Below, piece after piece: positions 25,096 to 30,312 of a DNA stretch of 64,000 nucleotides. The notes beneath the pieces were generated by a model. The model was given only the letters and a program-made list of their open reading frames with translations, searched no databases and was not told where the DNA came from. How positions within the stretch are numbered: position 1 is the stretch's first letter; every line of letters starts with the position of its first letter. Source of the DNA: Utricularia gibba (lineage: Eukaryota; Plantae; Magnoliophyta); NCBI GenBank assembly GCA_002189035.1, contig NEEC01000014.1, positions 372,001 to 436,000 of the forward strand, written 5' to 3'. A program made the position numbers and the translations under genes.

Positions 25096-25895
25096 TTACG
25101 AAGATCGAAACACGTCCTTGACAGCAGATGCAGCCGTCAAGTAATTCAATGTGTTTCTCAAAATCTCCTTCTCCCTTTCCAATCTTGTTGCAGTGTCTTC
25201 AAGCTCCAACAGTGCTTGCTGCTCCCACGGTGCACCCTCAAATGTACTCCCAACAAAGAAGGAGAATGGGGTTGGGAATTGATTCTTTCTTAAATCTTGA
25301 GCCTGTTTTTCAGGCTTCCCATTCAGCCGATTCGATAACCTGATCACATCCTTCATATTCATTTCCACTTCGTTAGCTAATGCATCTAGGCTCTGCGCCG
25401 CGCCGGAGGGCCGATCCTCAAGCCATACAACTTCCGCAACCAAATAAGGCTTCGTGCGGACCAATTTAGTGACCCTGAAACGCTCTTGCCCCTTACATAT
25501 CAGGAAGAATCGATCATCGAAAAGACGCTCGTGTTTGATTACCTCTCCAACGCAGCCGACATCGGTGGTTCCCATGGTGGGGTCCGTGTAGATTACGCCA
25601 AATCGGAGATCGGTGTGAAGGAGGGTGTGCATCATCATTCGATACCGAAATTCGAAAACCTGAAGAGGCAAAATTGCGCCAGGGAAGAGGACTAGCGGTA
25701 ACGGGAAAAGGGGTAACTCCACCAAATCGTCGGGATTGCGCGAATTTGCGCGGTGCTGACACCGAAGTGACGGTGGCCTCAGCTGGCGCCGCCGCCGCTG
25801 CTCGGAAAAGGAATATCTGGGTTTGGAGCAATGAAACTGTGGAATTATGTGAGGCGAACGAGAGGGAGAAGAATGCAGAATATGGGTAGCGCCAT
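25096..25895 (-). CDS. Lon N-terminal (LON_substr_bdg) domain protein, probably plastid-targeted; intronless; apparent 1-nt deletion at 25884-25886
   Basis: ELPLFPLPLVLFPGAILPLQVFEFRYRMMMHTLL. The upstream S/R-rich transit-like frame connects to ATG 25895 if one C is restored (MALPHILHSS...). Confidence 0.88.
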
Positions 25896-26145
25896 TGCCA
25901 GTCTTTCTTTCACCTCCTGGAGTAGAGGAGTGTGCAGAGTTTCTGAATTCTCAAACGGCGCTTATCTGGAGGAGGAAGGAACACGTGTAGGCAACTGCTG
26001 CGGGATTGAGATCCGCTGCTGACTTTTCAAAAGATCCAATTTTGATTCCTTTATTCACCTTTAAATAAAATTTATACAAACACCATAAATTGCAAATCGT
26101 TTCAACTGGACTGGAGCACGGGGCAGCGAACGGCGGCACTGGACA

Positions 26146-28142
26146 ATGTTTGCCCCTACGCTTCAAGGATTCAAGGTAGCTTCTTTGGCGCCATACTAGG
26201 GTTTAATTTCTTGTCTGGGCTGTAATGTTTCGTGTATTGGGTTGCAGCTGATACTGGGATCATCTTCCATTTCCCGCAAAAAGATACTAGCCGACGCGGG
26301 CTATCAGTTCACAACGATGGTGAGTTTTTTCTTTCTTTAATCTGAGTTGCTTGTCTCCGTGTGCAATGTGAAGGGATGACGATGAAAAGTTTACAACTTT
26401 TTTAGTTTTTTTGAATCTGTCTTGAAAACGCAGTTTTCTCCACGTAATTCGACCTGTGTATGTTTCAGGCTGCAGATATAGATGAGAAGGGCATCCGGAA
26501 GGAAAAGCCTGAAGACTTGGTGATGGCACTTGCTGAAGCGAAGGTATCATCTTTTTGATGGGTACCTGCTACATGGTTCAAGATAGCATCATTTTTCAGA
26601 AAATATCTTTCTTTTAACTTATGTCTTTATTTGTGCTTTAGGCGGACGCCATAGTCAGGAAAGTGAAGGCTATTGAGAAGGAGCCTACTGTCGTCATAAC
26701 ATCAGACACTGTATGCAGCTTATTTTTTTTCATTGAAGTCATGGAATTTATGTGACATTCTGAAGATATGGCATTGGTGTTTACATGTCAAGCTGGGCTT
26801 GTTTCTGAAATCCAAATTAGAGACTGATGAGTTTGCTTTCCTTGAGCCAGATGGAAAGAAAAGCATATAATCAATGTTTCTTTGATGATTGATTGCCTGT
26901 CTACAGATTTACTTGCTTATATCTACTACGTTTCTCACTAGGTAGAAAACTCAAAATCAAAGCTTCATGGTGAAGAGGATGCTGAAACAACCCTACTAAT
27001 TACTTGCGACCAAGTATATGAAATATTTTTTGGTTTATTAACGATTCTGTAAACAAAATTTGGATGCATGTATTCTTCAAGAAGTATTTGCTCTGAGGAT
27101 TGAATGATTATGTTTCATTTCTAGTGGTTTCATTATATACATTCTTTCTCATCTCACTTGGAATGGTATTATTGTGGAGGTTGTGGTGTATGAAGGGGAG
27201 ATAAGGGAAAAACCATCAAGCAAAGATGAAGCTCGTGAATTTCTGAAAGGTGTCACCACATTTCTGCATTTATTTCTTGTTTATATGGTAGTCTCATTGG
27301 CTAGGTTTTGGTGTTTCAGGTTACTCTGGTGGGCATGCTGCGACTGTGAGTTCTGTCCTTGTTACAAACCTCGGCTCTGGGTTAAGAAAAGGGGATTGGG
27401 ACAGAGTTGAGGTACCACTTGTCTAGCATTTTTTGTGTACAGCAAGGGACTTTGCGTTTCAGCAATTGTGTTTCTGGAGATTTATGAAGTTGGCACCTGG
27501 ATGGTGAACCTTCACAGATTTTGTTGTGCATAGATTTGTTTGAAGTATTTTTAGCTCCATTCCTGTTCGTTTCTACGACTTCATACCCATAAAGTTGATG
27601 TAGATTGTCAAACATTTCTCTTTATGTGACCCGTTTGTACACTGTTGCTTCATTCATTTTTTTTTCTCATAATTTTTGCAGATCTATTTCCATGATATAC
27701 CCGAGGAGATAATTGAAAAACTGGTACATAGTTCTCCATGATTTCAAAGATTTCCCTGCCAAAACTCATTGATGAATGAATTGCTATACTTTCCACAGAT
27801 TGAAGAGGGGATTGTGCTAAACGTTGCTGGAGGACTACTGATAGAGCATTCTCTGGTTTTGCCTTATATCAAAAAAGTGGTTTGTGCTTCTATTTCTGTA
27901 TTCCATAAAAAAAAAAAGTGATTTGCTTCATAAAACTCATGAATCAGATAATACATTGAAAAGCATGCAAAGCTATATAGTAACCCTTTCACCTTCAAAC
28001 GACCTGAGTCATGTTTTCTGATGATGTTTTTTTGTGTGTGTATGTCATTAGTTTTATTTTGCTATGGCAGGTTGGTGAAATTGACAGCGTAATGGGACTT
28101 CCAATGGCCCTCACCAGGAAACTTGTTGAGGATGTTCTGTAG
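26146..28142 (+). CDS. Maf-family nucleotide pyrophosphatase, with two alternative paralogous exons (26642-26710, 26942-27013)
   Basis: Spliced FK|LILGSSSISRKKILADAGYQFTTM|AADIDEKGIRKEKPEDLVMALAEAK|...|VVVYEGEIREKP...|...NVAGGLLIEH...|VGEIDSVMGLP. Confidence 0.9.
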
Positions 28143-28280
28143 ATTAATCTCCATATTCTTGTTTTTACGTAGCTTTATTCAGTTGTCTGCGTTATGTCAC
28201 TTGAATCTTCAGTATCTATTAAGTGGGTGTTGCCCAAGGGTTGATTCTATATGAAAATGATTCATTCCAGCGACCCATAT

Positions 28281-28969
28281 TTAACATAGTTCCAATGTGA
28301 GGTCTTCAAGATGTTTTATTCTACACAATGCAGACACATAACTTCTGCTATTTCTTTGAGTTAGATAGCACTCATATAGCTCGTAAGTTGAAATACGAAA
28401 TAAAGACGCCTGGCAATGAAAGGTGAAACATCGTGGTGCCTTTTCTTGTGAGTTTCCATCTATTCCACGCACTTCTGTAGCTATGTCTTCATTGAAGTTT
28501 CATATATTTCATCCTGAAAGAACAGAAGAAAAAAACTGTAACACGACGCTGCTCCTTTTTATCATGAGGTTAGAATTTCTGTTGAATTGTTTTTTATCAA
28601 TATGTTTGTATGTTTATGAAATGCTGCAATCCCTGTATGTGCTGTAGCATGTGGGTGAAAAGATATGCATCTTATGCTGAGTGTGTGACTGGTCCATACG
28701 ATTTCTGCATACCTTTGCTCCTGCATCTCAGCTATCTTATTGTTTTTGCTGCTGAAGTCTTTGTAATTTGGCACCGGAACTTTCCCAGATTCAATGCGGT
28801 TGATGTCATGGACTAGTCTCTGGTAATGCAACTTCACCTCCTCCACGCTTTTCCCGCCTACAGCCCGAGCCATGTTCTGCCAACGGTCAGGTGTGTCTCT
28901 ATCATAGGTAGCCAAGGCATCCTCGAAAGCCTTGTTTTGCTTTGCCGTCCAAGTAGAGTTGGAACTCAT
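28281..28969 (-). CDS. RADIALIS-like single SANT/MYB protein; exons 28969-28713, 28320-28281
   Basis: [52 protein letters not shown]...[11 protein letters not shown]. Exon 2 is less certain. Confidence 0.9.
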
Positions 28970-30312
28970 TTTGCAACCTTGTAGACAGGATGCTTGCAGT
29001 ATTGAGTTCTCACATTGGAGACCTGCTCTTATATAGTGTTGGTGAGGGGGGGATCTGGGAGAAAGTCTGAAGGAGACATGGCTTCCCTCACCTTTTGTAA
29101 GACAAATAAAAGACAAAGCTTACCCAATACAATGATGGGATGTCCTTTTGCAGATTTTATTCAACTTTCTTTCCAGATTACATGCATTTCTTTCTTCAGA
29201 ATAATTTATGGGTCAATTGTGATTGAAAATCTGCAACTGAACAAAGCCAATGTATTAGTAGAATGGCTTTCATGGTTAGTCCTCGTGGTCTACTGGGAAT
29301 TATACCAATAAGAAAGGGGATACTTGCAGCTTGAAACACTTGAAGCCTTTAGGCTGCAGTAATAATAAACTGAACAATGGTTAGTTTCTACTGGCACCAC
29401 CAATGAGGCTTTGTTTCCACTGGAAGTTGGATGGGAATGGGATTGAGGTTCAACCTGATGCCTATTTTTGGGTCAGTTGATTCCCATGTTCATTGATATT
29501 TGTGCCTATTTCCTCTCAAGTTATCCCCTTTCCTTTTCAATATTCACATTCGTGCTCGGTGGGAGAAAAATAAGGCTGACAGATGCTCTTTTACCCCGCA
29601 GTCCGTCATCTTCCAAAGACAAAACATGAGTTGCAGCAGAGGCGCCTGTCTATCTGATCAACGAGGCTTGAGGTGAAATGAAGGGGAGATGTTGCCGATG
29701 GAAAACTATCTTGTTGATCCTCCACGTTGGCGCTGCATCAAAATCCACCCTCAGGTGGTATCACCGCTGCTGCTGCCCGGCTGTGTTGTCTTCTGATGGT
29801 CGTGGTGAATGGATTCCCCATTGACAACGGTGATGACGATGAGCGTGCGGAATCAGGAATCCGATGCCCCTGTTGAATGGAATCCCTTTTTACAGCTGGG
29901 AGCTTCCATCGATGGCGATCATCTGAATGAGACTTGGACGCACGGCTTTCACTCGGGACGATGATATTTTTGAAGATGGGCCCCACCATATTGTGATTCT
30001 AGATATTTTGTCCGTACGCCACTACAAACAAGCTTACGGTTTGTTCATGTTTACTTACATGAGACCGACGACATAGAATCAAGAAAAAAAACTAAACCCA
30101 TTTTGTTATATATTATCATTATTTTTTGTAAATGTTTTTGGGATTTAAAAGAATAAATTTTCAACAAATAATATGTCAAAAAAACTCATTATTTCCAAAT
30201 CATTTTTTTAAACTACTTAAAATTTGATTCTGAATAAATTCACCACCCTTCCATTCACTTTCTAACAGGCACTGGGCATATCGAACAACAAAGTCTACTT
30301 GTAACAAGTGCA

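Follow-up and report, generated by a model that had tools for sequence, protein, structure and literature searches.

Introduction

Two types of Maf nucleoside-triphosphate pyrophosphatases are the closest described systems to the gene analysed here. YceF-type enzymes, such as YceF from E. coli and Tb-Maf1 from T. brucei, are m7GTP pyrophosphatases. YhdE-type enzymes, such as YhdE from E. coli, Maf from B. subtilis, and the Maf domain of human ASMTL, act on dTTP and UTP as well as modified pyrimidine nucleoside triphosphates. The two types are distinguished by three signature residues, which are R-T-Q in YhdE and W-Q-E in YceF, with Thr71 versus Gln70 at the second position and Gln153 versus Glu154 at the third (PMC3899018). 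Gln70 of YceF shapes the guanine pocket, and the Q70A mutation strongly reduces the affinity for the substrate (PMC3899018). The E154A mutant of YceF retains wild-type activity (PMC3899018); therefore, caution is required when function is read off single signature residues.

In plants, rice NAL22 is a protein with two Maf domains that controls leaf width, and according to its authors, neither of the bacterial signatures is matched by plant Mafs (PMC9962836). NAL22 resembles the present case as a plant member of the Maf family, and one with a genetic phenotype; however, it contains two Maf domains, comes from a monocot, and lacks the exon pair described below.

To our knowledge, many animal examples of functional diversification by tandem exon duplication are well documented, and hardly any from plants. 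Isoforms from tandem exon duplications, as collected in Kassiopeia, involve adjacent homologous exons of similar length and the same phase that are long conserved and alternatively used; mutually exclusive splicing was reported there to be essentially undescribed in Arabidopsis (PMC3923563).

A 64,000-nucleotide stretch of the Utricularia gibba genome (the window) contains a Maf-like gene with two such neighbouring exons, A and B. A sequence-only reading of the window had proposed that A and B are mutually exclusive and exchange the residue after the catalytic Asp, so that one gene could make two pyrophosphatases with different preferences for modified nucleotides. Here the locus is compared with its orthologues, transcripts, and predicted structures.

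Gene structure

The gene consists of ten exons on the + strand, and all of its introns are GT..AG (Table 1). Exons A and B are both phase 0/0 and are located between exon 3 (E3) and exon 5 (E5); the coordinates, peptides, and canonical AG/GT sites originally given for them were all correct. The predicted open frames are 200 aa for the form with A only, 201 aa for the form with B only, and 224 aa for the form with both (A+B), each with one terminal stop. A and B are neighbouring and homologous, have the same phase, similar lengths, and canonical splice sites, and in these respects look like mutually exclusive exons.

Table 1. Exons of the Maf-like gene and the intron between exons A and B (positions in the window).
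Feature	Position	Strand	Description
Exon 1	26146..26175	+	start codon, MFAPTLQGFK; joint 26173->26246 GT..AG in X1 and X2 contigs
Exon 2	26248..26319	+	LILGSSSISRKK; contains Ser and Arg of the Maf motif, both conserved; Ser as signature residue 1
Exon 3 (E3)	26469..26543	+	ends LAEAK; conserved Glu and Lys; contig joints, tblastn to homologues
Exon A	26642..26710	+	69 nt, ends SDT (VVITSDT); preceded by ctttag, followed by gtatgc
A-B intron	26711..26941	+	231 nt, GT..AG; joint 26710->26942 in X2 and X6
Exon B	26942..27013	+	72 nt, ends CDQ (LLITCDQ); preceded by cactag, followed by gtatat
Exon 5 (E5)	27180..27249	+	VVVYEGEIREKP, starts VVVYEG; continues the core strand; conserved Lys
Exon 6	27320..27411	+	predicted exon, contig joints
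Exon 7	27682..27723	+	predicted exon, contig joints
Exon 8	27799..27879	+	AGGLLIEH; Glu is signature residue 3, YceF-like
Exon 9	28071..28142	+	stop codon; poly(A) at ~28237 in X6

The best local match between A and B in the window, EKEPTVVITSD with DAETTLLITCD, is modest, being reached by 11 of 2000 shuffles. Their paralogy is clear from the orthologues, since both exons there share the pattern A(D/E)AI...EPT(I/L)L(I/V)xxD. The view that A and B are paralogous, in frame, and each able to supply a strand ending in the catalytic Asp is supported.

The protein belongs to PF02545. At the level of single exons the Pfam matches are weak (E=0.0027 for exon 2, which also has a tblastn match to homologues, and E=0.081 for exon 9) since the exons are short. 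Searches of PDB sequences with the A or B peptide alone gave chance matches only, the peptides being too short.

Transcripts and splicing mode

Transcript data were Logan contig sets from three studies of the one organism, aligned to positions 26000-28600 of the window. The runs are presumably RNA, which their spliced joints and a poly(A) tail support, and the best-matching contig sets contain about the exonic share of the words sampled from the stretch. The contigs match the locus at >=99%, including the UTRs, with clean GT..AG joints at every predicted intron. Joints E3-A, A-B, B-E5, and A-E5 were found along with those of the other exons; since all of them are GT..AG, A and B are both real exons.

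All transcript contigs spanning this part of the gene include exon A, with the E3->A joint in contig sets X1, X2, and X6, and as far as the contigs can tell this exon is constitutive. In X1, one contig of 802 nt reads E1-E2-E3-A-E5-E6-E7-E8-E9 and skips B; its pieces, including E5 (68 nt) and E7 (43 nt), total exactly 802 and leave no room for B. The depth across the B bins of X1 is zero, and A-only is the sole assembled form. In X6, a polyadenylated contig with a length of 762 nt reads E2-E3-A-B-E5...E9. Both branches are found in X2, where a contig A(28)-B(72)-E5(30) has a depth of 26.8 and the A-E5 joint a depth of 15; the A->E5 joint is listed with the label of 72 letters between, and inserted letters are excluded by arithmetic for X1 and not for X2. 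No E3->B joint was found among the assembled contigs of four runs, which show presence rather than absence or proportion, so that a rare B-only mRNA may still occur.

A-only and A+B mRNAs are present without an E3->B joint, so that the behaviour of B is that of a cassette exon: X6 and X2 contain mRNAs with B, and X1 and X2 contain mRNAs that lack it. The proposal of mutually exclusive exons is contradicted at this locus by the A-B joints in X2 and X6 and by the full A+B contig with its poly(A) end, and mature mRNAs of this gene are not confined to one of the two exons. Among the three isoforms whose junctions were looked for, A-only (X1, X2) and A+B (X2, X6) were recovered, and B-only was not. 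A search for a mechanism preventing double inclusion in the intron length, splice sites, frame, and folding gave none: nothing appears to enforce exclusivity, since the exons of 69 and 72 nt are multiples of 3, the intron between them has 231 nt, the sites are GT-AG, and no significant RNA structure is present. Control of splicing by RNA structure was considered and rejected, as region 26711-27179 folds no better than its shuffles (z=+1.32). An inverted repeat flanking B (26849-26874 / 27129-27154, 26 nt, 73% complementary) is absent from the MFE structure.

Distribution of the exon pair

Exon 6 (31 aa) was used as the query of an exhaustive representative search, which returned full-length plant Mafs. 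Word searches starting from an A+B protein of Salix and a single-exon protein of Cocos, followed by a search directed at the A-to-E5 junction, brought the collection to 375 proteins altogether. All exons of the U. gibba gene are 65-80% identical to full-length plant proteins with PF02545, and its shared exons are ~78% identical to those of many eudicots. Many of the orthologues are named '7-methyl-GTP pyrophosphatase' by NCBI.

Orthologues had been suggested as a place to look for both exons, and the pair is found there across the eudicots. Between AEAK and VVVYE, eudicot proteins carry in tandem a segment A of ~28 aa ending in (A/S/T)DT, to which exon A of U. gibba is orthologous, and a segment B of ~27 aa ending in xDQ. 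Both segments are present in ~110 eudicot proteins, with DT and DQ invariant, from Ranunculales (Papaver, Ranunculus, Aquilegia, and Macleaya) through Proteales (Macadamia), rosids, and Caryophyllales (Beta and Silene) to asterids. Arabidopsis At5g42770 presumably carries both segments as well. Monocots, Amborella, Nymphaea, and magnoliids have one segment and fall into two old paralogue clades, one with DQ versus one with DI or DT; eudicots additionally retain a separate single-exon DT paralogue. In the genomic loci of Amborella, Tasmannia, and Spirodela, one exon lies between E3 and E5, and no second copy of it was found in the flanking introns. By this phylogenetic and genomic distribution, the exon duplication dates to the eudicot stem. 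Given the age of eudicots, the duplication would be more than 100 million years old.

Individual loci vary. A and B lie ~1.4 kb apart in Vitis riparia. Exon A has been lost in Cucurbita pepo, where only B is present, 127 nt after E3, and in Telopea, where a remnant with an in-frame stop is left. In Corchorus, exon A is intact in the genome despite a protein annotated as B-only.

Isoforms in other plants

That alternative isoforms may already exist in plant annotations was a correct expectation, since A+B, A-only, and B-only forms are all present in public annotations. For Populus trichocarpa LOC7455717, isoform X2 is A-only (206 aa, P0061) and isoform X3 is B-only (202 aa, P0070); Populus A+B proteins of 233 aa (P0056) and a cDNA-derived B-only protein (A9P8F0, P0155) are also listed. 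In Vitis riparia, isoform X1 is A+B and X2 is A-only, and in Vitis vinifera, X4 is A-only and X5 is B-only. Alternative forms are also found in Carica, Abrus, and Ranunculus. Before the junction-directed search, A+B was the commonest annotated eudicot form (86 of 163 clean proteins), and it is present on transcript-sized Logan or JGI contigs of other species (P0092, P0143, P0153, and P0287).

Among the results of the junction-directed search are 63 A-only proteins, whose sources include Rosaceae, Fagales, Solanaceae, Lamiales, Asteraceae, Ericales, and further groups, and A-only is also found on one Logan transcript contig of 988 nt (P0336). The annotations found for Lamiales, which come from this search aimed at A-only forms, are A+B (X1) and A-only (X2 or X3) in three Salvia species and Sesamum, for example P0310 (A+B) and P0330 (A-only) in Salvia divinorum. 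This annotated pair equals the pair of forms in the RNA contigs of U. gibba.

Conservation and origin of A and B

In 85 A+B proteins, D85-T86 at the end of A and T110 and D112-Q113 at the end of B are invariant. The mean column identity is 0.86 for the A strand, 0.89 for the B strand, and 0.86-0.88 for the remaining protein, and key columns of the A(D/E)AI start reach at least 95% conservation in both exons. Compared with the single exons of the outgroups, A is closer to the ancestor in the first half (identity of 0.60 versus 0.43 for B) and B is closer in the second half (0.67 versus 0.47 for A). The possibility that exon A arose through conversion by the separate Asp-Thr paralogue is not supported, as its identity to that paralogue (0.51) barely exceeds its identity to the ancestral DQ exon (0.48).

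Over its last 14 residues, exon B of U. gibba shares 69% identity with the B exons of eudicots. It starts with VENSKSKLHG, like the B exons of Lamiales, such as VEN(V/A)QPKLHG in Perilla and Salvia, so that by sequence the gene probably comes from Lamiales or a close relative of that order. Most eudicot B exons start with AEAIL, and the AEAI start has been lost from B in the lineage of the U. gibba gene, as well as in Asteraceae and Linum. Loss of this start, which would continue the helix, fits a lineage in which B may never be joined directly to E3.

Active-site signature

The S-R-E-K-D-K motif of the Maf family is present. Its residues were mapped by a phmmer alignment of P0094, the A+B protein of Vitis, with YceF and with Maf of B. 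subtilis; in the U. gibba exons, LGSSSISRKK contains the Ser and the Arg, DIDEK the Glu, LAEAK the first Lys, SDT or CDQ the Asp, and IREKP the second Lys. The distinction of YhdE-type and YceF-type enzymes by Thr or Gln after the Asp, on which the sequence-only reading relied, agrees with the published signatures (PMC3899018). Its assignment of the Glu in GLLIEH as YceF-like was likewise confirmed, since this residue corresponds to Glu154 of YceF and is invariant in both alignments, A1 and A2.

Compared with YceF-type enzymes, the plant protein has the same Maf fold and the S-R-E-K-D-K residues, and signature residues 2 and 3 of YceF are matched by Asp-Gln of exon B and by the Glu in IEH. However, position 1 (Trp12 in YceF) is Ala in Vitis and Ser in U. 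gibba rather than an aromatic residue, Gln after the Asp (CDQ) together with Glu at position 3 (LLIEH) occurs only where B abuts exon 5, and one of the plant isoforms has Thr in place of Gln. Compared with YhdE-type enzymes, the A-only form has the same fold and shares Asp-Thr; however, it lacks Arg at position 1 and Gln at position 3, and is therefore x-T-E rather than R-T-Q. Thr of exon A is the only YhdE signature residue present, since Ser occupies position 1 and Glu position 3.

With Ser or Ala as residue 1 and, in either isoform, Glu as residue 3, A-only has a hybrid motif (x-T-E) and not a YhdE motif. Judged by their residues, the isoforms are x-Q-E (YceF-like) and x-T-E (hybrid) and not YceF versus YhdE. 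The proposed choice of DT or DQ by splicing therefore stands in part: the swap is possible through inclusion or skipping of B, whereas a switch between dTTP/UTP and m7GTP goes too far. It is plausible that substrate handling differs between the isoforms, in a direction and to an extent that the residues do not predict. A separate plant paralogue combines Asp-Thr or Asp-Ile with Glu, and the x-T-E state thus exists as a stand-alone enzyme.

Predicted structure

Structures were predicted for orthologues, namely the A+B protein of Vitis (P0094), with an alignment of 85 A+B sequences only, and the A-only protein P0266. The AlphaFold2 model of P0094 has the Maf fold (pTM 0.75), with a helix (47-74) that runs through the first half of A. 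Residues 74-101, which comprise the loop and strand of A and the first half of B, have pLDDT<50 and no secondary structure, and a continuous strand (106-117) is formed by TLLITSDQ of B and VVVY. In the model of P0266, the strand 79-90 is formed by the A strand and VVVY, with pLDDT of ~92. A Foldseek search with the P0094 model gave 2amh, 4heb, 4p0e, and 4jhc at a probability of 1.00 and TMt of 0.85-0.91; the best match in fold is Tb-Maf1 (2amh, TMt 0.88), and B. subtilis Maf, YhdE, and YceF are also matched. The phmmer alignments with solved Mafs cover residues 10-66 and 103-228 of the A+B protein, leaving out residues 67-102.

Asp-Thr or Asp-Gln lies in the middle of a strand that runs into exon 5, which suggests that the exon abutting exon 5 supplies the strand of the active site. 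As judged by AlphaFold2 and the alignment to solved Mafs, the strand used in A+B would be that of B, and with B added, the dipeptide of the active site is probably DQ instead of DT. The strand of A in the A+B model lies in a low-confidence loop, and the displaced segment may be disordered.

Proposed mechanism and alternatives

A proposed history of the gene can be described as follows. As a eudicot orthologue, it would encode a YceF-like Maf nucleoside-triphosphate pyrophosphatase. Its exon for a helix end and the catalytic strand was probably duplicated in tandem early in eudicot history, with copy B retaining the ancestral Asp-Gln and copy A having Asp-Thr. In U. gibba, A is part of all observed mRNAs and B is a cassette, giving in-frame A-only and A+B mRNAs. 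When B is skipped, A (DT) would supply the active-site strand; when B is included, B (DQ) would do so, and the strand of A together with the first half of B may be displaced as a loop of ~28 residues. A tandemly duplicated exon with B as the cassette, in which the copy abutting exon 5 sets DT or DQ in a YceF-like Maf, is the explanation that we favour, with a probability of about 0.65. The exon structure, both mRNAs, the conservation, the phylogenetic distribution, and the isoforms annotated elsewhere were directly observed; the strand used in A+B is a prediction, and the Thr/Gln difference may alter affinity or preference for (modified) nucleotides.

Strict mutually exclusive splicing, with A or B in each mRNA and never both, would yield DT and DQ enzymes from one gene. 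Its appeal lies in the formal resemblance of A and B (adjacent, homologous, same phase, similar length), in the A-only and B-only forms annotated for one gene in Populus and Vitis together with the B-only cDNA of Populus, and in the AEAI start of B, fit to extend the helix after LAEAK and at least 95% conserved in most eudicots. However, A+B mRNAs are found in two studies, one of them polyadenylated, as well as in transcript-sized contigs elsewhere, no E3->B joint was found in the four runs, no enforcing mechanism is visible, and B lacks the AEAI start in the lineage of the U. gibba gene; strict exclusivity is thus very improbable. The alternative that A+B, with DQ and an extra loop, is the sole functional product, skipping of B being noise and the A strand serving for example as a dimer contact or regulatory loop, draws on its being the commonest annotated form (86/163), on its presence in transcript contigs, and on an AlphaFold2 model that keeps the Maf fold. 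We regard it as unlikely, since X1 assembles A-only alone with zero B depth, 63 A-only proteins come from many eudicot families in addition to Logan contig P0336, and A-only is predicted to fold with high confidence; with its invariant Asp-Thr and a sequence pattern typical of a strand, A also resembles a working active-site strand.

Both isoforms could also be active and biochemically equivalent, with the duplication kept by near-neutral drift or as a variant in dosage or stability. Drift would not maintain the Thr after Asp in A and the Gln after Asp in B, which are invariant in 85 species; Gln70 matters for the substrate affinity of YceF (PMC3899018), and the separate Asp-Thr/Ile paralogue kept in plants suggests functionally distinct states. 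Against these points, the two isoforms share Ser and Glu as signature residues 1 and 3, A was lost without obvious harm in Cucurbita and decayed in Telopea, and the E154A mutant of YceF shows that signature residues can be dispensable (PMC3899018). On balance, equivalence is improbable to about the same degree as a sole A+B product.

The favoured explanation, a B cassette that sets DT or DQ, can be tentatively extended to a eudicot-wide switch with a probable age of over 100 million years. Whether B is spliced in or left out would exchange the active-site strand, the copy adjoining exon 5 prevailing, and would thereby toggle Thr and Gln and give enzymes with different preferences for modified nucleotides. 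Under this extension, which we hold to be somewhat doubtful as a whole, one gene might provide two enzymes, or three in some lineages, and the use of the exons might be tuned by lineage: A+B and A-only in Lamiales, all three forms in Populus and Vitis, and B only in Cucurbita.

Relation to known systems

Like the isoforms from tandem exon duplications collected in Kassiopeia (PMC3923563), the plant Maf pair consists of adjacent homologous exons of similar length and the same phase that are long conserved and alternatively used. Unlike classical mutually exclusive exons, exclusivity is not enforced, A+B is a major product, only B is optional in U. gibba, and the copy adjoining the following exon appears, from the models, to override the other copy. 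From this case it can also be seen how a protein accommodates both copies of a duplicated core strand. The exon pair has been kept across eudicots with the active-site dipeptide of each copy invariant, and since this dipeptide is a published determinant of specificity in the Maf family, the case is easy to test. If the isoforms differ, plants may use splicing to retune the sanitation of their nucleotide pools. In the annotation of many eudicot genomes, A+B models given as 'constitutive' and isoforms X2/X3 can be regarded as one conserved system.

The isoforms are already in databases. A literature search gave no published description of the exon pair or of the function of the isoforms, as the sequence-only reading had supposed, and no assay of a plant enzyme from this Maf clade was found in the searchable literature. 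In a rapeseed table, the other paralogue, AT5G66550, is listed without detail among the differentially spliced genes.

Exon A and exon B in other species

Exon A, the first of the tandem duplicates between E3 and E5, has been lost independently in Cucurbita pepo and Telopea, as judged from their genomic loci (L005 and L007, respectively). In isoforms of several species (Rubus, Rosa, Prunus, and Vitis piasezkii), 6-7 additional residues (LMETSQ or LMETSSQ) lie between A and B, and apparently arise where B is spliced at an alternative 3' splice site. A tblastn comparison showed that the window exons match the 351-residue protein P0058 from Cinnamomum micranthum twice, the annotated protein containing two Maf copies in tandem. 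In its two copies P0058 resembles rice NAL22, a two-Maf-domain protein; it may represent either a fused annotation of adjoining genes or a true fusion.

Features of neighbouring genes and of loci lacking a functional exon A
Feature	Location	Strand	Remark
LON protease N-terminal (substrate-binding) domain-like protein, by resemblance	window 25096-25725	minus	209-codon open frame
RADIALIS-like MYB gene, ORF	window 28562-29116	minus	convergent with the Maf gene
Cucurbita pepo	L005 2334-2462		E3-to-B intron of 127 nt, without A
Telopea	L007 8437-8508		A-like remnant still present, with in-frame stop

Transcribed regions and flanking genes

The LON-domain-like open frame and the Maf gene lie head-to-head, the frame being situated upstream at a distance of about 420 nt from the Maf start codon, and this layout suggests a promoter region possibly common to both. 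Within the gene, an uninterrupted contig of low depth (9.5) at 27382-27709 from X5, one of the Logan contig sets, crosses the E6-E7 intron. It differs from the window at 9 bases; either it comes from a different allele or accession, with the intron retained, or the X5 run includes genomic DNA.

In the contigs of X1 and X5, the Maf 3' region is covered up to 28515 (span 28268-28515), after which the aligned sequence is that of the window from about 28717 onward (TTGCTCCTGCATCTCAGC...), and therefore about 200 nt of the window are skipped. This gap could be an intron inside a long Maf 3' UTR or, alternatively, one in the 3' UTR of the RADIALIS-like MYB gene. Unlike X1 and X5, X6 has a poly(A) at about 28237 in the Maf 3' region.
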